Origin: Lama guanicoe
Lineage: Eukaryota
DNA length: 64,000 nt
Direction of reading: 5' to 3'
Assembly: GCA_013239625.1 (NCBI GenBank)
Contig: MU054413.1
Location: forward strand, 10,339,109 to 10,403,108
Shown here in pieces: positions 3,301-54,400 of this stretch (its first letter is position 1; every line of letters starts with the position of its first letter). The notes beneath the pieces are model-generated. The model had not been told where the DNA came from. It ran no database searches and saw only the letters and a list, made by a program, of their open reading frames with translations. Position numbers and translations under genes: made by a program.

Positions 3301-6300
3301 CCCTTTTGACAGCTGGGGGAAGAGGCTCCGAGTAGGGCACTGACTTGCTCACAGACACACAGCACACAAGGGCGCGGCAAGGACAGAGGCCCAAGCTACC
3401 CAACAGTTTTCTCTGCCTGATTCTTCACATCCTCCCCAAGTCTCTGCTCCCAACTCCTACTGCTCTGATTTACCAAAACTGCCTTTTCTTGGCCCACCTG
3501 CAGCTGGGATTTCCCACTAGCCCTTCTGCTCCCAGCAGCCCTATGGCTACATCCAGCTGAGAGAGGCGGAAGCTGCTTGAAACTGGATTTCCTGATACTC
3601 CAAGGTCTCCAAAGAACTGGGGATTCCCTTTCTAGGGGTTTCCCAGCCCTGTGTGAGCTCCTGGCCATAAGCAAGCAGATGGTCTGATGCCTTCTCTCCA
3701 AAGCCAGCCACCCTCTTGAAGGAAAGGAAGAGGTTCTGAAGGCTCAGGGAAGCAAGCCTGAGGGACTGGGGGCTAGAGTCCCATGAGGTGAGCTCAGTGG
3801 GGGAAGTGGGCAGGTCAAAGGCCCCCACACTACAAATTACCCCCCTCAGCAGCTGGGGCCGGAACACCCCCTGCCCCACTCCACTTCTTCTGGAGATTGG
3901 GGATAAAAGCATCTAATCAGAACCAGGTATGCATCCTGATTTCACTCCTATACACCCTTGGGCATGTGACTGATTTTCACCTTGATGTTCTAATCCGAAA
4001 AATGGGCTAATAAAGAGGTATCATCACAGGGCTGTGCTGGTGCTGGCCCAGTTCACCTTGTGTGTGTTGGACCCACGACAGCTCTTGGCATCATCAGGGA
4101 GATCCTGAAAGTGAGCCCAGGCAGCCCTCCAAAGGAGCTGGGGGCTTTCAAGGAGGATGTGGATGTAAGAAAAGGGTCCAAGGAGCGCTCCAGACCAGAA
4201 GGGGCAGTTGGAGGTTCTGAGAAGATGGGCTGGTGGGAGAGGTGCGAGTGATAATGGCCTTCTCTCCCAACTGTTCTTTGCGTGTCTCCTCACAGCTTAG
4301 TGGGGCTTGTGAGAGCCGTCAGCCCTGACGTCTCCCCACCAACAGAAGCCCCCTCCAGGTTCAGGCTGCAGTGGTGGAAATGTGGCCTTGAAGCCAGGCG
4401 ACCTGGAGCACATCCCTTCACTGAACCGGCTCTCCACATAATTTATAGTGTTTGCCAATTTTTTCAAGTTACCAACATGGTGTCAGTGAACCCGGGAGCG
4501 AGAAGAGAGGTGAGGAGTGGGTGTTGTGACCCGTACAAGCTGCTGCAGCACACCGCTAGGTCATCCACCCCACCCCACCCAGCCTTTGCTCTCTCTTCTG
4601 GAATGTGGGGAGTGCTCAGTGAGCCCCAAGTTATCTTTGGACTCTGAATGTCTACTCTTCCTTCCCAGAGGGGAGGGAGCCCCAGGCCAGGTGTGAGCCC
4701 TGCACCCTAGAGCCGGATACAGAGAGGGCTCCTTTCTGGGAGGGGGGCCAGCTGCCCACCCAGCACCCACCTGTCAAGCAGGCCTTGGCATCCTCCCAAA
4801 CAGGAGCAGGACTCCTGTGAAATGCCGCAACTGCTGTGCGTGCATGGCAGCAGCAGACGAGAAAGGCCCATGCTCTGCTGGTTTCAGAGCAGAAAGGCAC
4901 AGTGCTTGGCCAGACAGAGGACTTTGGGGGCACAAAAGGGTAGCATGTCAGAACAGAGTGAGCCACCACAAGTTCTGAACAGCAGGGGCTCCAAGTCTGG
5001 CCCTACAAAAAGAGTTTGTTTTTTAGCATCTTAAATGCAAATTCACCCCAGGTTCTATGTTCTATCCTTGGACTTCTCTGTCTCCTGCCTCAGTATACTT
5101 CTTCCATCTTGTGCCTTTAAATATCTCTAGGATGACTACTCCCAAATACCTCTCCTCAGTGCAAATTTTTCTCCTGAACTTCTGGCTTGAACATCCAAGC
5201 CCATTCTGACATCTCAAACCCAACCTCATCCTTCCCCCTACTTTTCCTGCTCCTGCCGCTGTCTTCCCATCGTCGGCTAACAGCAATGCTGCCTCCCTAG
5301 TTGCTCAGGCCAAAAATCTTGGTGTTATCCTTCGACTTTTGTTCACATCCCACATCTGATCAGTCAGTGTATCCTCTTGGCTCTGTCTTTGAAATATATC
5401 AGAGCTCTCACCACCTCCAGTGCCACCTCCCTGGTCCCAGCTACATCACCTCTAGCCCAAGTGTCTGCCATGAACTCCTACCTGGTTTCCTTGCTCACAT
5501 TCCTGAACCTCTATGGTCTGTTCCAAACTCAGGGACTGGAGTGGCCCTGTTGAAATCTAAGTCAGATTACATCCCTCCTCTGCTCAAAGCCCTCCTACCG
5601 TTCCCACATCACTTGGAGGAAAAGCCAAGTCCTCACAGTGGCCTGCAAAGCCCGACAACATCTAGGCCTGCTCCCTCTCTGATCTGACCTCTTCCTACGC
5701 TCCCCCTCATTTGGCTTCATGCCAGGCACAGGGCTTTTGGCTCCTCTGTGAACATGCCAGGCACATTGCGACCTCAGGGCCTTTGCATTTGCCACTCCCA
5801 CTATCTGTCATACTCCTCCCTGGATGTCCACATGACCCACTCCTCACCTCCTTCAGGTCTTTGCTCAAATGTCACCTCCGTGCACAGATCTTCCTTGAGT
5901 ACTTTCTAAAATTGAGCCGTCACCCTGGCACTCTCCATCTCCTGGCTTTACATTTCTCTGTAGCACTAAGCACCTCCCAATAGACTAAGTTGTCTACTTA
6001 ATCAGTTATGCTCATTGCCTGTGTCTTCCAACTGGAACATATGTTCTCTAAGGGCAGGGATTGGTGTCTGTTTTGTACCATTCTGTATCCTCAGCATCTG
6101 GAATATGATCAGCAAATACGCTCAATAAATGTTTTTTGAGTGATCAATTAAAAATCAAATGCTTCACAAAGATTTGGATTTCCAGCTTTTCTCTAAACAA
6201 TGGGAAGGCCTCCCCCATGGGCCTGCATTTCAACCTGACCGCAGTTGGCAGGAGTGAAGCTGCAGCTGCCACAGCCCCCACTGCTCCCTACTGTCTTGCC

Positions 6301-9300
6301 CAGACCTTTTCTCCCATGTATGCTCCCTGCCTGGCCCCAGTAGGCCTTGAGTTTGGGATTCCTACTGGACAGAAATAAGTAAAAACTGTCTTGAGAAATC
6401 TCTCCGGCCAATCAAACCCCTCTCTTCAACTGAGGCGAACAGCCAAGGTAGCTGTGAAGGCTACTAAGGGTTGACAATGAGATGTGCAGAGAAATCCGGG
6501 TGCTCCCTGAATGTGCGTATTTGGGGGGTCCTGAAGGTCTGGGCCAAGGATGCTCATCCCTTCTCTTCTCCGGAGCCTACTTTCTGGATATGACATAGGG
6601 GCACTTTTCTATCAGGTTCTCAAAGGGGTCTGTGACCTTCCAAGGCTACCAGCCTCTGATCCCAGATTTCAGGGTTCTCACTATATTCCTGGGGGAAGAT
6701 TATTCCCATCATATTACAGGCAGGGAGACTGGGGCCCAGAGAAGGCAAGATCACACGATGGTGGGGCTAACCGCCTCAAGACCTCCTTTCTCATCCTGTT
6801 CCGGAGCCAGGCTGGGGAGAGGCCCTCTGGATCATGCCACCCCCATCACCCAGCTCAGGCCCCACTCACCCAGAGGGTCTCCATCCACGATGCTGTACTC
6901 CACCTGTCCATTAGGACCCGAGTCCCGGTCATGGGCCAGGAAGGTCCACACTCTGGGTCCTGGCTGGCCCTCGGTGACATCAAATGGCCCCTCGTAGTCT
7001 TGGGGGAAGGTGGGCATGTTGTCGTTGATGTCATTCACATTCACAAGCACCTGGGGATGATGAGCAAGTTTGGCCAGAGCCACCCCCAGTCAGCCCTGCT
7101 CATCTGTAAACTGGACCGGATAATTCTGCCTCATGGGTCAATGCGAGAATCACATTGGATAATAGATGCAGGAGGGCTTTTTAAGCTATGCATGTGCGTA
7201 AGTCACTGTTATTGTCAAAGCCTCTTTATGGGCATAATAATATGGGCATAAAATTATTAATAATAATGCTAAGAGCTTCTACTTATTGTTGTACTGGGGT
7301 CATTTTACCTGGTGTCACTTGGTCTTCCAACATTGTGAAACAGTTTTTATTCTCCCCCTTTTACTCAGGGAGGTTAAGTTACTAGCCCAGAGCCACACAG
7401 GTAGGAAACAGAAGATCAAGGATGTGAACCCCTGTTGGTTTGACTAGAGTCTGTGCTCTTCCCACGAAGTGGGGGAAGACAGGTGTCATTATCTAGCTGA
7501 TGGTTGCAGCCACACAGAGAGGTTCAGTAACCTCCTCAAAGTCACAAAGCAAGTTTGGGTGAGTTGTGGAGACCAGACAGGGCTTTTGGATTGAGATGTT
7601 TCTCCTGGATAATCTTTCTCTACAATACTTCCCCACTGAACTTTCTGTGACCTGTCCTGCCCCAACCCCAAATTGGGGCTGTGCCCCACCACTCACCGTG
7701 GTGGTAGAGGTGAGGCGGTGGGACAAGATGGGGCACTGGTCTGTGGCGGTGACAGTCAGGGTGTAGTGCCCGTGGCTGATCTCGTAGTCCAGCTCCTTGG
7801 CAGCACGGATGACGCCCTGTGGGATACGGAGAGGGACAAGGGTGGATCAGTGGGTGGTGGGTCTGGGCCACCCTAGGGACTAGCTCCTTCATGAGGTACC
7901 CTCTGACCACCCCAGGAGGTACGCCCTGACATCCTGGCCATGATAGGGAATGCTGCTGTCCTCTAAACCAGGCCCCACCCATGCTTTTCATACTCCTGCA
8001 TGCGCTGCCCCGTTGGTTTCCTCCCAGACTCCATCTTTGCTCTGTCCTCAACCCCATGATGTCACTGAGCTCCCCTCTAATCCCTTTAGCCAGCTGATCC
8101 TCCTCCTGGACCCTGCTACCAGCTGCTGACCGTGTGCCTGTTGATATGAAAGGTGTCGATGATGTTGCCTGCAACGATGGTGTAAGTAACGGTGCCATTA
8201 GGCCCCTCATCCAGGTCTAGCGCCTGGATGGTGACCAGGCTGGCGTTGATTGTGTCTGGGCCCTCATCCAGTAAGATCTCGTAGTGGGGCTGCTGGAATA
8301 CAGGTGTGTTATCATTCTCGTCCATGATGGTCACGTACACGTAGGTGGTAGCCTGTGGAAAAGAGTAAGGTCAGGTTCTGTGGTCAGCTGGCTGGAGGAT
8401 TTGAGGTGGACCCAGCTGGATGTTCTCCTAGGCTGAACTTACTCAGTGGGATTCAATAGAGTGAGGGAAAGGGAGAAGGATGAGAGTGAGGGAAGTCCCA
8501 GGCTGATAGTGGAAGAAATCACAGAGGCTTCACCGAAAGCCAAGCTAGGTAACTGCTTTAGGTCCAAGTTAGCACTTGCACCACCACCCTTCTGTCCATG
8601 CCCATGGCAGACATCACTAATCAATCATGGTACTGCTGGGGCCAGATGCAATCCCAGGATTCCTGTCAGCATGCTGATCTAGTGATTAAAACTGGTATAT
8701 GAGATGAACCCCAGTAACTACCTCCAGCCCATAGCTTTGACTGGGCCTGGGTCTTCCTGACACTGGGCCTCCTTCTAGATCACAAAAGGCAAGAATGTGA
8801 TGTACTCAGTCTACGCATTCAAGCTTTACCCATTATTCATGTAAGTGAAAGAAATACCCATTTTCAGCATTTTTGAGAGGAACAACACTGGGTTTGAGGC
8901 AATTACATGGGCATAATTTGTTGAACTGTGAAAAGTAAAGCTCTCAGCACATGACTTCACTGCAAGAACAGTTTGTGCACCATGTTCTCCTGTCAGTGAC
9001 CATTTTTGGCTGATTTGGTCCAATCAGACCACAGGTAAAACTTAGCCAATCGGAACTCAGCAAGTAGCACTCAAGAACCACTGAGAAATGGTTGATGTGG
9101 CACTTCAAAAGCAGAGTAGATAAATGGAAGAAGGAAATTAGCCATGTGCTGGCATTCTCTGTCCCCCTGCTGCCCTCCTCCCTTCTCTGCTTCTGTGCCT
9201 GGGAGGATATCCCCTGTGGACTGCCTCACCTAGGCTCCCTTGACATCTGGCTTTCAGACGGTTTGGCCAATGGAAGGTCCCAGCAGAAGACAGGAGAGGA

Positions 9301-12300
9301 AGGTACTTCACTCATACTCCCTCCTTTCCTCTCTGCAGTTCTGCCAGCAGCTGTGTTTCCTGTGCTGCGTGGCCCCTCTTTCAGGGTCTAGCCCTCAACG
9401 GGCTCCAGGTGCCTCACCTCCTCTTCTTGTCCTTCTGCACCCCTGGGCGGGTAATGGCTTCCTGTGGTTGTTGATCTACGGGTGCCTCACTAGCTCTCTG
9501 TAAATGATCTCCCATTAAACTCTCTTCAGCTGAACCCTTTCTGAGTGTGCCAGCTGTTTCCTGTCAGGACCTTGACTCATACAAACTATAATTAGTGACT
9601 AATATAAAATAATAAGGTTACAACAACTGCGAAGACGTCTGGGTAGAGAGAATGTGACCAGGCCATTGCCAAGGGCAGGGAACAGAAAGCAGGTAGTGCA
9701 AAAAGCTGGATGTAGACAAACTGTGTGCACCTTTTGCTTGGCACTGGCTGGCTCTGGAACCACCTGTGGGAGGATGGACAGAAGGACAGGAGACCTAACT
9801 GTAGAAGACTGTCACTGCCCCTGTGGAGGCCATGAGTCCCCGGAGCTGCAGCTCTGGTTGGGGGGGCGGGCGTGCTAGGTAGTTGTTGGAACTGTTTCCA
9901 AAGCTGGTAGGGTTGGCAGCCTTGAGTTGAGGCTCTGTGACCTTGGTCATGTCACATCTCTTCTCTGGACTTTGTTAATAAAGGACCTGACTTGTTCTTT
10001 AACATCCTTTCTGGCTCAGGCATCCCGAGGTTCTGGTCTGTTATCATTAGTCTAAATCTCTTCAATAGGAAGCTATTCCTTTGGGTCTTAGAGTCTCAAC
10101 GAATATTTATGACAATAAGCACACAGAGTGGGAAAATGTATTATTTTAACATTTCTCAGACTTCTCCACTGGAGTGGAGCAGGAACTTGCACTGAGTTGG
10201 GGAAAAGCCTGAAGTGTTTGTCTCAAGAATGTAAGATCTTTGAGACCTCTCATTATCTTTGAAAGCTCAGATAAATTCCACAGTCTTCTCTATAACGTGT
10301 TTGTATTGGTTTTCATTAAAAACAGTGGTGGGGTCTCCAAATATCTGAGTACAGATGACTGTCAAGGAAGGCCACTGTGTGCATCTTGTGGCTCTTCATG
10401 GTCCTGGATGCAGCTAAGAGCACTCACTACGGAGGAGGAGCTCAGCATGGCGTCCTCCTGAGCCCCCTTCTGCCAGTAAGAGCACACGAGCACCGCCCTA
10501 CAGGAAGGAGGCCAGATTCCAGACCCGCTGACATGGTGGGGGTGCTGACATTTCCCACTTCCCTAGACTCCTGGAAGTGGTTCTCACCATCGTGCAGGCT
10601 GCGGGGGCTGAGAGGGGTGGGGGGAAGGGCTCTAATAGAGCCCCCTGTCTCCAAGACCAGGCCTAGCTTGGGAGGCAAAGGTGGGTCTGACTTCCCCTGC
10701 CCTCTGGAGTGAGGAGGAAGTCAGCACCCCAAAGGCCCTCTCAGTCAAGCCCTTCCTGCCCTGGCACTGAAGAAAGAGTTCTTGAGGTTTCTGGACCATG
10801 CCCACACCTTGGGCAATGCCTCTGTGTCTCACCCTGATGCGAACTCAGGAGGCTGAGTTGGGGACAATGTGGTGGGGAGGGGAGGGAGACTGAGCCCAGG
10901 TCAGGTGTTCTCGCCCTCTGGGGAAGGGGCGGTGAGGCAGTTGCTCCCCTCCCCTTATCCAAGGCTTTCTGCACTTACCTTCTAGGCCCTGGGGCAGAGA
11001 GTCTGGTTTCAAGGGTGGCCTGGGCAAGGCCAGGCAGGGGTGGGGAGAGGGAAGGCAGGTGCTCCAGAGTCTCACTCTTCAGTGACCCCTCCTCACCGCT
11101 GCCAGAGGATGGCCAAGGTGGGGAAAGGGCCCAGCACCCACCTGGTTTCAGTTGGCTTTGTAGCTTCCCTGGGTGGAAGAACTCATACTCTGCCAGCAGC
11201 AAGGGCCCTGGGCTGTCTCCCAAAGTGGTGCCATAATCATGATCAAGGACCTGGGTTATGTCCTGGAAATCTCTAGGGCAGCCCTCCCAGGGGGCTCCGT
11301 GGCTCCAGATGGCCTGGGCCTGTGCAAGTTCACCTAGTAATAGCATGATGCCCACTCTTCCTCTGTGGCCCAGGAATGAGAGCTGGGAACTCTCAGAGAG
11401 CCTCGGACTTACAGCAGCCCACCCACGGGTCACCCAGAATTCCTGGCTCCCCTGAGTCTTACCGCCTTGATTCCTGACCTACATGGACTCTGGCTGTCCT
11501 CTGTCCTTCAGCCTGGGTGACGCCTGTGAGCTCAAGATCTCTAACAGGCCAGCAAAGCCCTTGGAAGCTTTACCCAGGCTGGGGTAAACTAGGTACAGTT
11601 GTAGTGCCCTCCCTCTCCCCTGACCCCTGGCACTATCCACTGTCACCTACACTTCTATTTGGGAGATCACTTACTCACTTATTCATCAATTTGTCTATTC
11701 AGATAAGAGTGTATTAAACATCTTCCCTATGTCCAGTTTTGTGCCAGGGACTCAGAAACATCAGGGAGAGGCCCTAGTCCCCAAAAGCTCATAGTCCAGC
11801 TCAGGAAGGCAGATAAACCCAGGTGGAGATCAGCTGGTTGGAAACCTCAGGCTTGGTGTGATAATCAAAAGGGCTGCGGACTGGAGGAGGACCCTCAGGG
11901 GAATTTCAGGGTACTTTGTGAAGAAGGACTTCACTTAAGCCCTAGGGGATGAGAAGAACTGGGAGGAGAGGAGAGAGACATTACCAGTGGTGCCAGTGCT
12001 GGGGGGAGTGCAAGAGCAGAGGACCAGAGGTGGGGGCTGTGAGAGAGTCCTGCAGACATCTACGTGCAGGAAGTGAGAGAGACTGCAAGGCAGGAGGTGA
12101 AGCTATGGCCTGGGTGAGAGGAGCCCTGATTTTTCCATGAGACACACTATCTGAAGATGCACGTGCACATGCACAGATACACACGTGTGTGTGTCCCAGT
12201 GTAGAGATGTGCCAAGCCTGCTGTGTACTCCTGCACCTGTGCCGAATCTGTGAATGTGTGCATGTGCATGGGGGTGTTGCGGGCTCTGGAAGCTACAGTC

Positions 12301-42400: not shown

Positions 42401-45400
42401 CTCCAGGAGGGCCAGAATGTCAGGGGCCCACATGTGAGGAGGCAGTGCTCATGGGTCTCCACCAGTCTAGGCTGGATCCCTACAGAGGGTTGGGTCTATA
42501 GATGAAAATTCTTTCTAGCCATAGGGACCCATCCCAAGTTCTGCAGGGACTGCTTGGGGAGTGGCCCACCCATTGTGGGTGGTTAAATGTGGCTAGGGTG
42601 ATTTCACATTTCTCTAATTCTTGTTTCTTCTGGAAGCCAAAAGGAAGCCAGAAGTTGCCTCCAAAACTCAGAATCTTAGAATATTATGGGTCTCACCAAC
42701 TGCCTCTTTAGGAAACTCTAGGACTTCAGGGTGTGGGGAAGGGTGGGGAGTGGGGTGAGAGTAGTGTGTTCACTGGCCTAGGTCAGGATGAGGAAGAGCA
42801 GCATGGCAAATGCTATCAGTCATGCACCCAAAATCTATTCTCCACTTCTTCCTCACTAGCAGAGCTCTGATTTTGTTTGAGACAGTGATATATCTGGTCC
42901 CCAAATAATAAGCCAATTCTGACAATCCTGTCCCTCATTTTTTTTCCAAACTCCTTTGTTCCAGAGTACCCATGTGAACCTCTTCTGGCCAATGAGGCAC
43001 AATCAGAACTCTGGAGAATAGTTCTAGAAAACTTTTTACTTTCCTGATAAAAGGGCAGAAGTGGCATGCATTGCTCTTTGTTTTCTTGTCATTTCCTGCC
43101 TTAAATGCCAACATGATGGCTGGAGCTACAGCAGCCATCTTGCAACCATGAGGGAAAGGCCAAGAAACATTAGCTCTGACATCACTGAGTGTGAAATTAG
43201 CATTTGTAATTCTGTGGAACTCTTGTTATGTGAGAAAAATGCATTCTAATTTATTTATGTCTTCATAGTTAAGTTTTTTATTTGTAGCCAAACACATCTA
43301 TAAATGCTATTGGGGAGCTGACCAAGAAGATGATTCACCCTGAAGCTAGGTGCAGGTAGGGAGGGGTTATGTCACAACTGAGTCCCTCCATGTCAGCACA
43401 ATAAATGATACCCCCCTGCCTGTCCTCCCCTGTTAGTGTGTCTCTGGCCCACTTGTGTGATTGGCTGAAGTGACAGTATTATCCTGGGCTCTTTAGAATG
43501 TGGGTCCACCATCCTCCCCAGAGACACACTAGATAAAGAGCCCAGCTCAGACCTGCTCCGACCGCACAGTCCACAGTACCATTGTCAAAAGAGAGGGGTC
43601 CAACAGAATCACCTTTTGGGGACAGAGGGACAGAGCTGAGGCCTCATTTACCATCAGGGGCCCTAGGGCAGACAGATTACAAAAATGTCCCCAATCCTCA
43701 CACCTCCCTATATGTACACTCTGCAATGTAACTTTGCAGTTCAGTCCTTCAAAAGATAGAGTTTATTCCCCTACGTCTCCAACCTGGGCTGGCCTTGTGA
43801 CTTGCTTTGGAAAACAGAATGTGGCAGAAGTAACCTTGTTCTGGGCCCAAGCCTGGGCCTCAAGAGGCCTTGCCTGCTCCTGCTGTCTCTCCTGGACCCT
43901 TTCTGGCTCCATATGAACCAGCACTGGCTAGCCTTCTGGGATAGGAGAGGTGGCCCAGTTGCCCTATCATTCTAGCTGACAGGCAGCTGACCCCCAGAAG
44001 AACAGCCAGCCAACCAACACATAGCCACCCACACGTGTGGGAGCCCAGTGGACAGCAGAAGAACCGCTCAGCTAAGCCAGGTCCCTACTGCCAGCCTGCA
44101 GAATTGGAGCTAAGTCAACAGCTGTTTTAGGTCTCTCTGGTCAGTTTGGTTTGTAAAGCAGGATTATGGTGGTGATAGCTGATACAGTCCTCCTCCTCAT
44201 GGATAACCAAGCGCTTCCACAGACGTGAGCTAATTCAATTCCCCAAGCACCACCTCTGCAGGAGATCTTATCTCTCTTTTATAGATGACAACGCCAGTAT
44301 TTGGAAAGGTTCTGACTTGCTCGTGATCACGCAGTCAGCTCACAGTAGAAATCATCCCACCTCAGCCCATCGCCCCAAATGACGTCACCATCCAGCCCCG
44401 CAGGCCCTATCTCCTTGTCCAACCTTACAGACCTTGCACATTGCTTTGGGCAGTGGCCTCACCCACGCAAGCATCAGACTGGACCACAGACATCAGCCCC
44501 TGCCAACTCTGACATGTTACCACAGAGCATCACACCGATACGATGTAGGGGAAGAGGCCAGAGGGCACCTTCTCCCATTTGGAACAGACAAACCACCATG
44601 TGGGTTAGCGCGGCTCCATAGGTACACAGCTTGGCAAGTGGAGTGAGGGTTGGCCAGACCCCAAGGCACAGACTCAATCTGGACCATCCTACAGAGCTGC
44701 CCTGGGTGAGCACAGAGGCCAAAATAGACTCTGAGTGGCCACAGAGGCAGATGAACCAACACCCTAGCTTGGCACACACCAGCCCCCCATAAATATGCAT
44801 AACTGATGGACTCGAGGTGCAACAAAATCGTCAAGGACTCACCCATGCATGGCATTCCATTCCCATCCATCCTGTCCCCTCACATAGAAGGTGGAGCTGC
44901 CCTCCTCCACCTCCCCTCCCTGTGGCCACCCCATCACTCACCGACAGGGTAGGGGTGCCCTCATCCTCCACGGTGACTAGCAGGTGGTAGAAGCTCTGCC
45001 GCTCGCGGTCGGGCGGGGCAGGCCGCGTGGTGATCTCACCGCTGATGCGGTCCATGCGAAAGGTCATGTCCTTGTTGCCCTCGGTAATGTAGTAGGACAG
45101 GACGCTGTTGATTCCAATGTCACGGTCGGTGGCTCTCACCTGGACCACGGTGGTACCCCCACCCACGTTCTGAGGGGAGAGCAGAAAGGCGGTCATTCCG
45201 GATTCAAGGCCTTTAGGGCAAAATCTAGCACCTGCTCTTGAGTGCCCAAGGGTTGCACCTGACTCTGGAAAGCTCTGCTCTATCCTGGGTCCATGATAAG
45301 GAAGATAAAGATCATCGTGGTGAACATTCTGTGGGCACCGTGTCCGAGTTAACTCATCAAATCCTCTCTATAACCCTACAGATTAGGTCCTCTCCATTTA

Positions 45401-48400
45401 CGGATGAGAAAACTGACCTGCAGGGGAGGAACGTGTGTGAGTCACACAGCAGAGCCACGGTGTGAATCCAGGGAGGCCTCTACAGCCCTGTGTCAACCTG
45501 CCTTCATGAATGTCCAGCCTAGAGTGATACCCAGCAGGGTCTGGACAAAAATTCTACCAGAGTGACTCGATCTTAGGACTGAAAAATGTGTGAGCTATTT
45601 TATTTAAAAGCAGCTCTCTCAGGGTAAACAGGTCCCTGTTGGTGGTGAAAGGCTACTTTCTTTATCTCCTCTCCTTTCCTCTCCTCTTCATCCGAACCAT
45701 GAAGAGCTTTCCTCTGTAGGCAGACCTTCAAACGGGTGCTTCATGGTCAGCTCACACCCACTGTCCACCCTGGATGTTCAGCTGTATGGGCGCCAGAGCT
45801 GCCCTCACCTCATTGACACTGACGTTGTATCCAAAGGCGCTCTCGATCACTGGAGGGTTGTCATTGACGTCTAGGATGGTCACTTGCAGGATGTGGTCCT
45901 TCTTCCGTGGAGGGGTGCCACGGTCAGATGCCACAACCTGTGAGGAGGGGATGACTGGAATCAGGGCTAAGGGTGAGGGGGGGATCAGGAATATGGAGTC
46001 CGAATGTGCTGTCTGCTCAGTGTGGAGGAAAGAGAGGGCAGAGGGACTCACTGGCCCATCCCTGCCCCCTCGGTGGCCGCTAGCCTTGAGCCCTCCCCAA
46101 GGCTTTCAACATTTGTCCTATGCTGCAAACCACTGTTGCCCAATTTTCATCTGACTGGGGACCCTCCTTTGCAATCTAACTCCGATATGCCCAGTTTTTA
46201 CCTCCTGACTATGACCCTGGGGGCCTGCAACCAGACCCAGGGCTCCTGCCTGTAGCTTCAAAGCCTCTGTTCCATGTCCTCAGATCTGGTCTCTGACAAA
46301 CAGAGAAACAGTCTCAAATAATATTTTCAGTAATGATCTAGAGTCCTAGCATAGCCTGAGTCTGTCCTTAGGAGACTTGCTGGTTCCCAGATGCCTGCAA
46401 GACAGCAGAAAGTGCTTGAGAGCTCAGACTCCTGCAGAAGCATGGCCCTGGGGACCCCAGAGACTCCTTAGGAAACATGGCAGCCACAGCAACTCAGCAG
46501 TAATGGTGGCCTTCATGATTCCTTGCTTGTACGTATTTCTCACCTCAGCAGAGATTTTCCCGCCCCATGCATGGTGTGGGGGAAACTAAGGCCCAGGGTA
46601 AACAACTTGCTCAAGGTCACACAGTGTCTGTGTGCAACAGCCAGGGCTCTTATCAGCTGGCAGTCTTTCTCTCCTCACTCTTATAGCAGAGACAGATACC
46701 TCCCGTGTTTCCTGCCCTGGGTCCAGAGACCCCTCCTCCCAGGATGCCCTTTCCCAGGTCAACCTCACTCATGCTCTTGGCCCTTAGGAGTGCTGTCTGC
46801 CCCACGGCCCTTGGTGTCAGCAGCAAGCTGACTGCCCGGGTGTGCTGATAGGCTGAGTTGTCTCTAGATGGAGGGGGGCTGGTTCCCACCTTGAGGATAT
46901 AGTGGTCCAGCTCTTCTCTGTCCAGCAGTCTGGCCACAAACACTTCACCAATGGAGTCATTGGTGGTGATGATCTCAAAGGCCCCAGCGATGTTGCCAGA
47001 AGCCAGGGAGAAGACCACCTGTCCGGGGGAAAGAGCATGCCGAGTGAGGAAGTGTAGAGGACGGGACAAGGGGCGCTCCTCTGCCCACCTGGGCCTTCTG
47101 CTCAGCAAAGGTGTCTGAGAAGAATGTGTTTTAGGCAGAAGTGGTTACAACCCTCAAAATGGGGGTAGTGGGTCCACTGAGGTGATGCAGGGTCTGTGAC
47201 AGGCTCCTGGGTGGTGGGGGGATGTGAGCATACTGGCCTGGGGCCAGGAGGGCGGGTGAGTCCCAACACATGAAGTTTCCCAGGGCCGGGGGCGGGGAAG
47301 CACTGAACCCCCCAGCAAAGGAGCAGGCTTGGCCCTGCTGTTACAAGGACTCTATTGGGCTCTCACAACAACCCCGTCACAGGGAGCCACTCTCTTCAGC
47401 TCAGAGAGGAGGCTGCGGACAGCGAAACCACTGGCGAGGTTACACAGCTTGTAAGCGCCCAGGAGAACAAGGATTTGAACCCACAGGCTTCTAACTCCAG
47501 AGCCAGCATCCCTCAGCTCCCTAGAGGTGTGCAAACATTTAAATAAAGGTAGAAACCTCCTCACACACAACCCAATTTGTAGCCTAGGTCAAAGTGGTGT
47601 GAAGACTGAAACATCTGTCACTCCTCTTCCTCGTGCTCGGGGGGAGGCCCAAACCTGCAGGGTTGGGGAGCACTTCCTGCTGTGGGACAGGTAGAGAGCC
47701 TGAGAAGCAGGGGTGCAGAGGAGCGTGGGGAGGGCTGCCCAAGGATGGCACAGAAGGTGAGATGCTGTGTGGTTTGTGGATGAGGTGACCCGGGATTCAC
47801 TGGGAAAGCTAAATCCCCACAGCTCGCTGTGGGGAATGACTCTGGCCAGCCTTCAGCTCTGTGCTCCCTGGACCCAGGCAGGGCTGACTGCTTGAACAGC
47901 TCTGCCTCCTTTCCCAGACCACGGACTGTGGTGAGGGCCAGGCTCTCCTGCTCAGGACCAGGCAGAGCCTGGGGGACCCTGCTTCCTGCTTAGTGACAGG
48001 GATGGCTTGGGAGGCCCCCTCCAGCTGAGGGGCTGAGGGAATCCCCTCCTGACAGGCCAGTTTTGGATTATTTCACCTGGTGCCCACCTGCCCATTGCTG
48101 CCAGCGTCGGGGTCCCGGGCCTTGACGGTGGCCACGTGCTGGCCCACAGGGTAGTCCTCGGGCACACTGACCGCTGAGTCAGAGGTGAAGTCGAACCGGG
48201 GACTATTGTCATTCTCGTCCAGGACAGTGATGTAGACCTGGGGATGAACACAGCCAGAGAACTCCCACCTCCTTCCCCTCCCTGGCCCCAGTCACAGGGT
48301 CTCACCATGGGCCCGGTGGAGACCAGACCTCCAATCCATTCCAGAAGGTCAGCAAGCTTTCAGAGCCCACCTAGGCCAATCCTGATTTTACTCGGAGGCC

Positions 48401-51400
48401 CGAACACATTACTTCTGGGAGTCTAGTCGGGGAGGGCTGCACACACTCAAATGCTGGGGGGCTGAGGAGGGGGGACTCAGAGGTGGTGGGGACTTGGAGA
48501 ACCAGAAGGCACGGGCCCTGGCTAAAGGGAACAGAGGCTACTCAGCTCCAAACTGGGGAGGGAGTGCCAGCATGGCACTGGCATAGCTTCCAGGTTTTCA
48601 AAAGGAATTAGGAATCCAGACTTTTATGTGGAATTAGGTGTTGATTAATAAAACTTAAAAAAAAATCATGTGCAGGCCAGTTAAAACACATCTGGCAGCC
48701 AGATATTGCCCGAAAGCCACTTTGTCCACACCTCTGGATTAGAGGGAAGGAAATAGGGCTCAGGAGCAGGAGGGAGCCATGAGGTGACTTGGTGGTCCCA
48801 GCAGGGAGAGGGCAGATGGGGAAGGGAGGGAAATTTCCAACTACCAGATAAAGAGGGAACATGCAAGCTGCATGTGAAGAGCGTGCTGGTTTGTGTCTGC
48901 AGCTTGGGTTTCTGCTGCAGGGTCTGGATGGTAAGCCTGGAGAGAAGGCCTCCAGCTCATGGACGGCCACAGGTACCCCTTAGGTTCACTGATGAGGGGA
49001 TGAAAATGGGGCAGAAGAGGCTCAGATTTTAGGAACCCCAGGCCAGGTCTCCCCTGACCCCTTCCCAGGCCAGACCCCATCTTCTCCTTCCCCAGGCCTG
49101 GGCCTCCAGGGCTCACAGGCCCATCTGCCTCCTAGTGTGCACAGGATCCCATGGGGAGCCTTGGGAACCTCACCACATTGCAGAGAAAATTCCATTTCAT
49201 CCTCTCTCCTAATCAGGTCTTCCCTCTTCTTGGTCCTAGACACGCTCCCGCATCTTAGGCAGCTGTCGGGACCGTACGCAATGAGCCCAGGCTTTGCAGC
49301 AGGACTGATTCCACCACTTACTAGCTCTGTGATTTGGCAAAAGTTACTCAACCTCTTTGGTGTTCCATTTCCTCAGATGAAAGTAGGAACAAGAACACCT
49401 ACGGCATCAAGATGCTGGAAGGAATAAATGAGCCAACAAAAGTGGTCCCCATCCTGCTTCTGGCCTGGCTAAGAACTGCCCATGTATCATTTTGGATTTT
49501 GTTCAGGGAGCTCTGTGACGTCCCAGAGCCCTAGTCTGCTCTCCTGTGAAATGGGCATAATAATGTCTACCACACTGTTCTCAGGGTGAAAACAAACAAG
49601 GCCCCTATCATCTGATCCCTCCCAAAATCTGTCACTCGGGTCAAGGCCTTATATGGACTCCCCATGCTTCCTCCTACCACAAGGCCTCTGCACATGCTGT
49701 TCCCTCTTGCATAAAATGCTCTTCCTTTTTGGCTGTGCAAACTCCTATATTTTCTGGGGATCTCAGCTTGAGTCACTTCCTCAGGGAAACCCTCCTCGAT
49801 TTCCCTGACATCTCATTATAGGCTCTCTCTTGGCATCTAGTGTGATAATCTGATCAATGTCTTTTCTGTTTGTGAAGGCAGAGGCTGCATCTGGTTTTGG
49901 TTTCCTGCCATATGTCCCCTGAGCCCAGCTCAGAGTCGGGCACATGGTAGGTACTCCCTCTATGCTACTACTCTCATCATGATCATGATGATGTTTGTGA
50001 CATGCTCCCAGCACTAGGGAGTCTGCATCAGTGAGTGAGGAGGGAGGGCAGGTACCAAGGCCTGTGGGAATTAGCTAAGGGTCTGTGGCCCCACCCAGGG
50101 CCTCATGGTCCAAATCACCTCCCCCATCAGGCAAAGGCCCCAGCGTGTTACTCAGAGCTCTTACGGCAGAGTCCCCCCTTCCCCCAGCCCAGCCTGCCCC
50201 CTTCCTGCTGTCTCCCCACCCCTCTCAGGGCCACGGAGCTGCTGGGACTGGGAGGAGTCAGGTGTAGGTGAGCTGTGGTTTAGGGGTTCCGGCCTCACAG
50301 AGGAAATGGTGGCACCTTTAAAAGGTCCCTCAGCCTGCCTCCACCCCAGCACCTCCAACAAATTTGGAGCTAACAGAGCTGGTGTATCTGGGGCAGTGGC
50401 TCCTGGGAGCCTCTGAGAGGAAGCCGTCGGGTGGGTCCTGCTTCCTGGAAGAGGGTGAGGGACTGTGGAAACACAGGGGCCCTCCCAAGAGTATGTACTC
50501 TAAAATGCCCTCACTTGCCCAAGCAGGGGAAGGGGCCAAGGCTTCCACGGCCTCGGGAGGAGCGTTCCTCCTGCTTCTCGGGCTCCTCTTGGCTTCAGCT
50601 CCTGGACTCAGGACAAGGGTGAGGGGCAGCTGGGCCCACTTTACAGATGAGGCTCAGTGAGAGGGCCTTCTGAAACTTAGATCCTCTGGCTGAGAAGGGC
50701 AGGAGCCCCAGCTGGGCGCTGCAGGACATGTGGCACCTGCTCACCATCTGCCCCCCGAGGGCTCTGCTCACTGGCTGCCCTCTGGGATCCCCAGGGAGCT
50801 GAGGGCAGCTGGGTGGGCTCACTGCTGCTTGTAGCCTCACTCACCCCAGGCTGGCCCCATGGACGGAGGAGGCTTTTGGGTACAGCCAAGCCACAATCAG
50901 GGCCACTGGCACTGGGCACTTCTAGGGAGCCGTGCGGCAGAGGATGCTCTTTGCCTAGACACCGGGTTGGTCTGTACCCTTTGGCTAAGGTGAAAGGGAC
51001 TCGGTGGGGGTGAAATTTGGCTATAACCAATGTTGATGATGAGCTGGAAACCCTACGTGGTCTACAGATGACCTCAGGACTGTCCGGCTGGGGCCCAAGC
51101 TGAATCGTGGTTAAAAGTTCTCATTATCATGGCAGAATGCCACCCCATAAGCAGCCCCTGGGGCCCAACCCCTAGCCTGAGGTCACCACCTCTCTTATTC
51201 TTCTAGGAATCTTGCCTGGTATCTCCGACCTCAGCAGTCACCCTTCCCAAAATGCATAAGGTCTTGGTGCCTTTACTTAGGGTCCTTGAGGGCAGTGACT
51301 CACACCGAGTGCCCACCGCTGCCCTTACCCAGCACTCCCCAGGCCCTGACCAGTGCCCCACTTCACACGACTTACTATAACACACTCCTTACACTGATCC

Positions 51401-54400
51401 CGAGAGAGGCAAGGGGTACCCTTTACAGATGCTACTCCTATCACCCCTTCCTACAAAGGGTTTCCAATCTGCCATTTCTGTCACATCCTCTGAGGAAGGG
51501 AGAGCAGCTGGCATGATCCCCATTTGAGACCCAAGAAAAAGCAGCACAGAGAGGTTGAGCAACTAGCCTACATTACATGGCCAGTGAGGAGCAGAGCTGG
51601 GTAAGGCTTCAGTGTTTCCTCCACTGTTTGTTCCACGTACTCCTTGTTAGTGCACCATTCACCCCAGGATCCCATGAGGGGCTCGGCAGGACATGCAGGG
51701 TAGAGAGAACAGAGCTGGATGTGGGGTACATGTCCAGGAGGGGCCTGGACTCAGGTGTGAGAGTGTATGGACTGGAGAGTTTGGGAAGGGTCTGAGCAGG
51801 GACCAGCTCCTGGCCTGCCATGTGCCCTCTCCCCAGGAGAGGCAGGAAGGCTCAGCACCATGCAGAGCCCAAGCCAGCACTGGCCACAGACAGTGCTCAG
51901 GGGAGAGCCCTGGTCCACAGACTACTCACCTTCTGTAGGCAGAGTGGCAGGAAGCGGCCGAGGGAGAGAAAAGGCAAAGAAGGTGGTTAGCAGTCCCAGC
52001 CCAGCACCCACTCCAAGCAGTGGTCTGCTGAGGATGCCATCCTGCCCCACCACCTGTCTGAGGTCTCCTCCCTGGTCCAGGCTGCCAGGGAAGGTGTGGC
52101 ATGGTTGGCCACAGTGCCATCCCTGGGCTACTGAAACCCTCACCCACTGCCTGGCCTGCATGTTGGGTGGCTGGTGAAGTTGTGGGTTTGGGGGCCATTG
52201 GGGCAGTGATGGGCTGTCCCTGTGGGGCTCTCACCTGGGGATCTACTCACCACAGTGGAGTCTACTTTGGGGCCGCCGTCATCTGCCACCACTGTCAAGG
52301 TGTAGAAGTCACCTTTCTCCCTGTCCACCAGGCCCTTGACTGTGATCACGCCCTGCAGGGAAGGTGCCAGATGGGCAGTGACATCATATACACCAGGCAG
52401 AACCTACCTTGTCCCCAAGCAGTCCCGTGCTCTGATCAAACTGGATTCCTCACCAGCCCTGAGCATCCTGCCCACTTTCCCACCTCCACATCACTTCCTC
52501 TGCTGGCATAACTTCTCTGTGAAGCTCTGTCTGTTGAAATCCTCCTTCTCTCCCAATCCTACTTGGACACCACCTCTTCCATGAAGGCTTCTTTCTCCCC
52601 TAGCCAGGTGCCACCACTCTCTTATATGGGCCCCAGAGGGGCTCCATTATATCTCTATTACAGTTCTTTTCATATCATCGCTTGGGGTGCTCTGATCTGC
52701 ATCCTTGATTATTTCCACTGCTACTCCTAGCCTAGGAACTCTTTGAGGGCCAGGAAGGGTCTTGTTCATCTTTGTATCCTCAGTATCCCCCAGGACAAGG
52801 CCTGGCACATCATAGTGATTACTGCCTTGCCTATTTACTTTTTCTTTTCACTTTGCCTATTTTCAAAGAAGGGATTCTGACTTGAAAAAAAAAAACACTA
52901 AAGAAAAGATGGAAGAGTAAGATCTAGGCAGTAGATAAGACATAGCTGCACCAGACACCTAAGACTAGCTTTTGCAGTAAAGCACTAAATTTATATGTGA
53001 GCTTCCTAACAGCCAGGGCAAAAAGGGAAACATGATGACTTGCATAGCTTTCATTGACTAACAAGAAAACACCAGGTTGCCTATGCATAATCTTTATCTT
53101 ACCCTTAAATATTAAACAGATGCATCACAAGGATGTTTATCTTTATGACAATGAAGAGAGTGCTATGCACATAGAAGGAACTCGATCAATACTGGCTAGC
53201 TTTAAAGGCACTGAGCAGCCTGCCCCCAGGTAGAGCCCTTGCTGTGCTTGCCCCTAGCCTCCCTCACCGTGATGGCATCTATCTTGAAGAGGGCTTTGGC
53301 CTGGGCGCTGGTGTAGGCGTCGAAGCGGTAGGTGATCTGGTTGAGGTTGTCGATGGAGTAGGCCTGGACCCGCACAATCTCGGTGCCCAGCGCCAGGTTC
53401 TCCAAGATGGCAGCCTCATAGGAGGCATTGGAGAATTGCACAGCCTCGTCCAGCTCATTGAGCAGAGTGATGTAGACACTGCAGAAGCCCTGGTTGAAGG
53501 GGGGTGCCTGGTCAGTGGCGGATACGTTCATCAGGTAGCTGGTCTTGGTCTCATAGTCCAGGTAATCCACGGTGATAATAAGCCCTGTGCTCTCATCAAT
53601 CTCGAACTTGCCCTCCGCGCCTGACAGGATGCGGTAGTTCACCAGACCACCATCCCCTGCAGGAGGACACAAGGGGCTCGGCAGTCCCGGTCGGGGTGGG
53701 CTGCCTGGGGCTTTCCAAGCTGCCCCAGTGCTCCCCTTGCTGTCCCAGAGGGACAGGGCGAGGGGCCTTGACTGGCTCACCCAGTATACACCACCCCTCC
53801 CCCACTCCTGTGGACCAGGTTGTCCCGAGGGACAGTACAGAGGACAGGGTCAAGGGCTATGTGGACAGCAAGTCCAGCACACTCTGTTGACCTCCTCTGG
53901 GGCCTGTCCTTGACATGAGGGGGTGGTTCTATTCCTGGAACCTTAAAATTCAAGCTCAAGCACTTCTCTTGGGTATTTGGACAAAGAGAGGGTGGGGAAA
54001 TTAGGGATCTCTTATAGTGGGGGCTTTGATCTAGAAAGTTTAGATGGTGCAGCATCTTTGGGGGTGGCTATGCCTTCATTTGGTCCCTCTGGCTGAAGGG
54101 TTCCAGTATCAGGGTTACCCTCCTCTGTTCTCCAGACTCCCTCCACCCCAAATTCCTGTGCTTTGTTGGAATACATCCTTCAACCAGAAGCTAGAGTTGG
54201 GATTCCTTAGCTGCAGTCCACATACTTCAAAGAGAATGGTTATAAAACCACTCAGGCAATCCCAGACTCCTTTGGAATTATTTGCAAAAGTCTGAATGGA
54301 CATGCATTTTTTTCTGGGGAGGGATCCATAGCTTTCACTAGTTTCTCAGATTCCTGGCCCAGAAAAGATCAGGAACCATTGGTCCACAGCAGCATATAGG

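Follow-up and report, generated by a model that had tools for sequence, protein, structure and literature searches.

A known one-codon exon of the cadherin-23 gene in Lama guanicoe, most likely obligatory for the long isoform

The cadherin-23 locus and the exons that flank the AAG codon

The stretch of Lama guanicoe DNA analysed here (the window, 64,000 nucleotides) carries exons of cadherin-23 (CDH23), a gene of hearing and vision, on its minus strand. The exon of interest lies between two longer coding exons:

52251 to 52352, minus strand: coding exon upstream of AAG, 34 codons (102 nt), both ends in phase 0, last residues ...DSTV
48088 to 48237, minus strand: coding exon downstream of AAG, 50 codons (150 nt), first residues VYITV, then the LDENDN linker

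The upstream exon codes for the later part of a cadherin repeat and closes on the donor GTG/gtgagtag (slashes mark exon boundaries); the downstream exon, preceded by the acceptor ccccag, codes for VYITV, then for LDENDN, a calcium-binding linker, and then for the first part of the cadherin repeat that follows. The exon peptides were searched singly against the sequences of solved structures, and the exons were never joined, either for a search or for a fold. In these searches the upstream peptide matched residues 63–96 of the cadherin-23 chains 7u71 and 5wj8, as well as residues 169–202 of chain 5vh2. The downstream peptide matched residues 98–147 of 7u71 and 5wj8, and the 50 residues of this exon showed 3/50 and 4/50 mismatches to the two best-matching solved chains, so that the DNA belongs to neither of the two species whose protein was crystallised. 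A preliminary description of this DNA had assigned the gene to cadherin-23, and the matches of both flanking peptides to 7u71 and 5wj8 bear out the assignment; the same description had the flanking exons ending in DSTV and beginning with VYITV, exactly as is found at 52251 (before gtgagt) and at 48237 (after ccccag).

The end of the 102-nt exon has a small peculiarity of its own, namely a tandem GTG/GTGAGT that is present in the window (52245–52256, minus strand) and also in L001 (4911–4924), an unrelated metagenome contig that is described below. The GT located three bases upstream of the donor of this exon is a possible donor that would drop one valine; its context is poor.

The AAG exon and its splice signals

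Between the two coding exons, the following features were located, given here in the direction of transcription:

51933 to 52250, minus strand: intron before the AAG exon, 318 nt; the other eight introns measured in the window are all longer
51986 to 51990, minus strand: branch-site consensus CTAAC, with its A at 51987, that is, at -55 from the exon
51935 to 51985, minus strand: pyrimidine tract and spacer, inside a 76-nt AG-free zone
51969 to 51964, minus strand: TCTCTC, at -37 from the AAG exon
51949 to 51947, minus strand: TGC, at -17 from the AAG exon
51941 to 51939, minus strand: TGC, at -9 from the AAG exon
51930 to 51932, minus strand: 3-nt exon AAG, one Lys, tacag/AAG/gtgagtagt, in frame
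51924 to 51929, minus strand: donor gtgagt of the AAG exon, AAG/GTGAGT, 9/9 consensus
48238 to 51929, minus strand: downstream intron, 3692 nt, between the AAG exon and the 150-nt exon

The arrangement agrees closely with the one first described for this place, where ctgctaac, a pyrimidine tract and tacag/AAG/gtgagt had been noticed on the minus strand. The branch-point adenine, which had been put about 54 nt upstream, was measured at -55, and the AG-free zone, which had been put at about 75 nt, was measured by a script run on the sequence at 76–78 nt to the nearest upstream AG, with 77–83% pyrimidines in the acceptor region; the two TGC motifs were found at the distances claimed for them.

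When the signals were compared with those of the other exons of the gene in the window, AAG/GTGAGT was the only donor with a 9/9 consensus among 14 CDH23 donors, and the AG-free zone (76 nt) was the second longest among 16 CDH23 acceptors; the density of G triplets in the 318-nt intron showed nothing unusual. The 4-kb span between the flanking exons contains 22 stop-free AG-NNN-GT sites, and the AAG site is the only one of them where a donor that matches in full goes together with 80% pyrimidines and an extended zone free of AG. From the base composition, the strict 12-mer found at the AAG exon is expected 0.0008 times in this span. Positions 49672–49711 were masked in the scan for AG-NNN-GT sites and in the comparison of donors and introns.

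A second match to the motif YAG-AAG-GTRAGT is present elsewhere in the window, in the large cadherin-23 intron at 8353–44941 (approx. 36.6 kb), which separates the exon that ends at 44942 from the exon that starts at 8352. This match reads ctag/AAG/gtaagt at 10973–10984 of the minus strand, and has another AG 9 nt upstream. It looks like an unused decoy, given that chain 7u71 has no room for an extra residue at that place. Its occurrence means that the YAG-AAG-GTRAGT motif, taken alone, is no proof of an exon.

Source of the lysine

The peptides of the two flanking exons are separated by exactly one residue in both 7u71 and 5wj8. In 7u71 this is residue 97, a Lys located between ...STV and VYI..., and AAG encodes Lys. 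The identity of residue 97 was read through a search with a sister repeat boundary contained within a single exon (45937–45809), whose secondary alignment covers residues 84–117 of 7u71; the boundary with the Lys aligns gap-free to this sister, which is the next repeat boundary. The flanking exons contain no alternative donor or acceptor able to add one codon. The earlier proposal that the AAG exon is the sole source of this Lys is therefore upheld by the one-residue gap in the solved chains and by the Lys at residue 97 of 7u71.

It could be argued, from the unused match at 10984, that the AAG at 51930–51932 is likewise a look-alike that arose by chance and is never spliced, and that the extra residue has a different source. 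Such a coincidence is contradicted by the fact that the codon corresponds to the Lys of the solved protein and that the exon, together with its layout, recurs in L001; the lack of a splice site in the flanking exons that could add one codon also speaks against it, as does the literature, in which a 3-bp exon of CDH23 is stated to exist (PMC8268283). We consider this explanation hardly credible.

Conservation of the exon in other contigs

The exon was sought in other contigs that carry related sequences. L001 shows 80% protein identity over the neighbouring exon of 129 residues and has compact introns. Its copy of the 102-nt exon also ends GTG/gtgagtag, and 937 nt beyond this copy, at 5854–5856, it reads caacag/AAG/gtaagc. 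This AAG exon of L001 is preceded by a CTAAC with its A at -49, by 91 nt free of AG, and by TGC at -15 and -32. The exon is thus conserved in the one other species examined. Another contig, L002, is 70% identical to the exon of 129 residues and ends before the next exon. Word searches with the exons of 50 and 129 amino acids returned no spliced fragments, only genomic open reading frames that read through.

An alignment of the flanks had been suggested as a check on the exon, and it was carried out with this one other species. Upstream, the window and L001 share a block just after the branch site and a CTCTGC that lies at differing distances from the AG. Over the upstream 60 nt there are 43 matches, a value that none of 200 shuffles reached; five neighbouring acceptors gave 32–39 matches in the same comparison, so that the margin of the AAG acceptor is modest for a pyrimidine-rich sequence. 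Downstream, no conservation between the window and L001 was found beyond the donor itself.

A further observation concerns P0048, from a contig with L001-like protein sequence. There, the exon of 129 residues is separated from the 102-nt exon by a short intron that has no stop in frame, so that the ORF caller read through it into the next exon. It shows that intron lengths in this part of the gene vary between lineages.

Known microexons and alternative exons of CDH23

A review counts 69 exons in human CDH23, to which it adds two microexons, one of 6 bp and the other of 3 bp (PMC8268283; the same is said in PMC12752033), and a clinical paper of 2025 uses these microexons to explain shifted exon numbers (PMC12752033). 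The human 3-bp microexon agrees with the exon in the window in gene, in length and in being in frame, although it belongs to another mammal and the orthology is based on the protein match and not on a DNA alignment. The exon in the window lies between an exon that ends one repeat and an exon that starts the next one, where it supplies a residue that is present in the solved cadherin-23 chains. Judging from this, the AAG exon is an already known exon, the predicted orthologue of the described human 3-bp microexon, and the guess made in the preliminary description, that the exon would be found annotated in human, is confirmed by the statement in PMC8268283.

Other exons of the same gene differ in their inclusion between tissues or transcripts. 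Exon 68, which codes for part of the cytoplasmic tail, is alternative and, according to PMC7397384, is regulated by RBM24, RBM38 and PTBP1. In a long-read study of the human retina, skipping of CDH23 micro exon 12 and of exon 69 is listed. In contrast with exon 68 and with micro exon 12, which is skipped in a retinal transcript, no such variation is described for the AAG exon in the papers searched. The table of the retinal study contains no event that involves a 3-bp exon, a difference of 3 nt being hard to detect. Likewise, no CDH23 form without the Lys was found in the papers searched, where a difference of this size is easily missed by aligners and annotators. Exons of 3 nt are also found elsewhere in mammalian genes: the ribosomal protein gene RPS24 has a 3-bp microexon that is described as an alternative exon in PMC12686416.

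Protein context of the lysine

The repeat that carries the Lys, which we take to be EC13 from the titles of the PDB entries, is the second repeat in chain 5vh2 and the first one in 5wj8 and 7u71. The Lys precedes by seven residues the first Asp of the DENDN calcium linker, a spacing that would place it in the last strand of the cadherin repeat. To compare it with its sister repeats, the spacing that separates the DxGxP proline from the first linker aspartate (DxND) was counted in residues, exon by exon. With the Lys, this spacing is 13; at the sister boundaries in the window it is 13 in four cases, 12 in one and 17 in one. The Lys gives its repeat the modal length of the sister repeats. A form lacking the Lys would be as short as the shortest of them, and is therefore not clearly unfoldable.

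The intron that follows the Lys codon (51930/48237) occupies the same position as two other introns of the minus strand, 59947/55331 and 7697/7050; the shared position is in phase 0, and the first DxND aspartate follows six residues later. At the 59947/55331 boundary the same six residues are found on each side and there is no extra codon, the spacing being 12 versus 13. The place of the one-codon exon is therefore exactly one where introns recur, and the exon may have originated within an intron that was already there.

Obligatory exon or sensory switch

The interpretation that we favour, with good confidence, is that the AAG exon is the one-codon exon already known from cadherin-23, and that the long isoform most likely always includes it. 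Constitutive inclusion is suggested by the protein sequences, by the literature and, more weakly, by the absence of reports of variation. Since the Lys is part of the normal protein, the exon is read as obligatory wherever cells produce full-length cadherin-23, rather than as a switch.

The preliminary description had put forward, as a hypothesis, a switch specific to sensory cells. Under such a model two functional versions of the protein would be made, one with the Lys and one lacking it, and their last EC13 strands would not have the same register or length. Skipping of the exon keeps the reading frame, so no decay of the mRNA would be triggered; one sister boundary has a natural spacing of 12, and the acceptor has a layout of the microexon type, all of which would be compatible with such a switch. 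Nevertheless, a single residue is present here in each of the two chains that cover the junction (7u71 and 5wj8) and is a Lys in 7u71, the Lys brings the repeat to the modal spacing, and the papers searched offer no form devoid of it. Furthermore, the hair-cell degeneration of the Srrm4 mutant is attributed to failed inactivation of REST in PMC7652395. On balance, a sensory switch seems unlikely, and obligatory inclusion remains the preferred reading.

Possible dependence on SRRM3 and SRRM4

A separate question is whether the inclusion of this exon requires the splicing factors SRRM3 and SRRM4. The microexons that respond to these factors are 3–27 nt long, as given in 10.1101/2024.11.29.626094. 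Their donor is strong, their branch site and pyrimidine tract are strong too but lie far upstream, and they have a UCUCUC...UGC enhancer in which the UGC lies between the tract and the AG in 74–79% of the targets; it was also reported that shortening exons lowers their inclusion (bioRxiv 10.1101/2024.09.17.613571). The UGC motif had been described by Nakano 2012, along with 54 Srrm4-regulated exons (PMC3464207). The AAG exon fits this layout, with its 3 nt, the TCTCTC at -37, the TGC at -17 and -9, the branch-site A at -55, the 76 nt free of AG, the 9/9 donor and the shortest intron upstream. It shares with the SRRM3/4-dependent (eMIC) microexons the length class, the donor strength, the distal branch site and pyrimidine tract and the AG-free zone; a UGC also lies between tract and AG, a feature that does not distinguish the AAG exon from ordinary CDH23 exons. 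However, that class is defined by dependence on the factors and by tissue-restricted inclusion, and the AAG exon is a candidate member of it.

The fit is not specific, because TGC occurs between -35 and -5 at 8/15 ordinary CDH23 acceptors in the window, in two copies at 2 of these. The text of Nakano 2012 (PMC3464207) does not mention Cdh23, and neither do the searchable supplements of two further microexon papers; the methods used there could hardly have detected a 3-nt exon. No link between the 3-nt exon of CDH23 and SRRM3/4 was found in the papers searched, and a review of cochlear splicing discusses no Cdh23 splicing event except that of exon 68.

With these data, it can be asked whether inclusion is strongly dependent on SRRM3/SRRM4 while no switch exists. 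The exon would then owe its inclusion solely to the fact that the cells making full-length cadherin-23 also express the factors, which would bind GC/UGC elements directly ahead of the AG and aid the early recognition of the acceptor; the shorter form, lacking the Lys, would be confined to cells without the factors and would itself serve no function. The length of 3 nt falls within the 3–27 nt class, and the reported effect of exon shortening points in the same direction. The TGC motifs at -17 and -9 lie between the pyrimidine core and the AG, with the TCTCTC at -37, as in the published enhancer, and in L001 a TGC (at -15) is retained, as are a CTAAC far upstream and a long stretch devoid of AG. 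On the other hand, TGC is common at the ordinary acceptors of this gene, its positions differ between the window and L001, and the distal branch site may have no other purpose than to keep clear of U1 on so short an exon; the absence of Cdh23 from the sources mentioned above is a weak argument, given that an exon of 3 nt is barely detectable. We hold strong dependence to be nearly, though not quite, as probable as its opposite.

A further version of this proposal is that SRRM3/SRRM4 are indispensable for the inclusion of the exon, so that hair cells or photoreceptors deprived of the factors would make a tip-link cadherin one residue short in the last strand of EC13, and this could add to the defects of the bundle or of the outer segment. 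In a bolder form, the versions with and without the Lys would both be used, and would differ in the mechanics or the calcium binding of EC13–EC14. We regard this proposal as unlikely.

Proposed splicing mechanism

An exon of 3 nt is presumably too small to hold U2AF at the AG and U1 at the donor at the same time. Because the two would not fit on the exon together, the two introns that surround AAG are probably removed one after the other. This process would be aided by the perfect donor AAG/GTGAGT, by the distal branch site at -55, by the long AG-free and pyrimidine-rich acceptor, and by the short upstream intron of 318 nt. The GC/UGC elements located between the pyrimidine core and the AG could, in addition, recruit SRRM3/4 in hair cells and photoreceptors.

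Significance

If true, control by SRRM3/4 would connect the tip link directly with a splicing programme. This idea is tempered by the fact that the hearing loss of Srrm4 mutants has already been given another cause: PMC7652395 attributes the loss of hair cells to a failure to inactivate REST, and reports that inhibition of the repressor rescues hearing.

Regardless of the factors involved, an exon of 3 nt is easily missed by gene predictors and by read aligners, which leaves a cadherin-23 model that is one residue short. A missed AAG exon also shifts the exon numbering used in clinical reports (PMC12752033). Finally, splice variants at the donor or the acceptor of the AAG exon could give rise to deafness or Usher syndrome.
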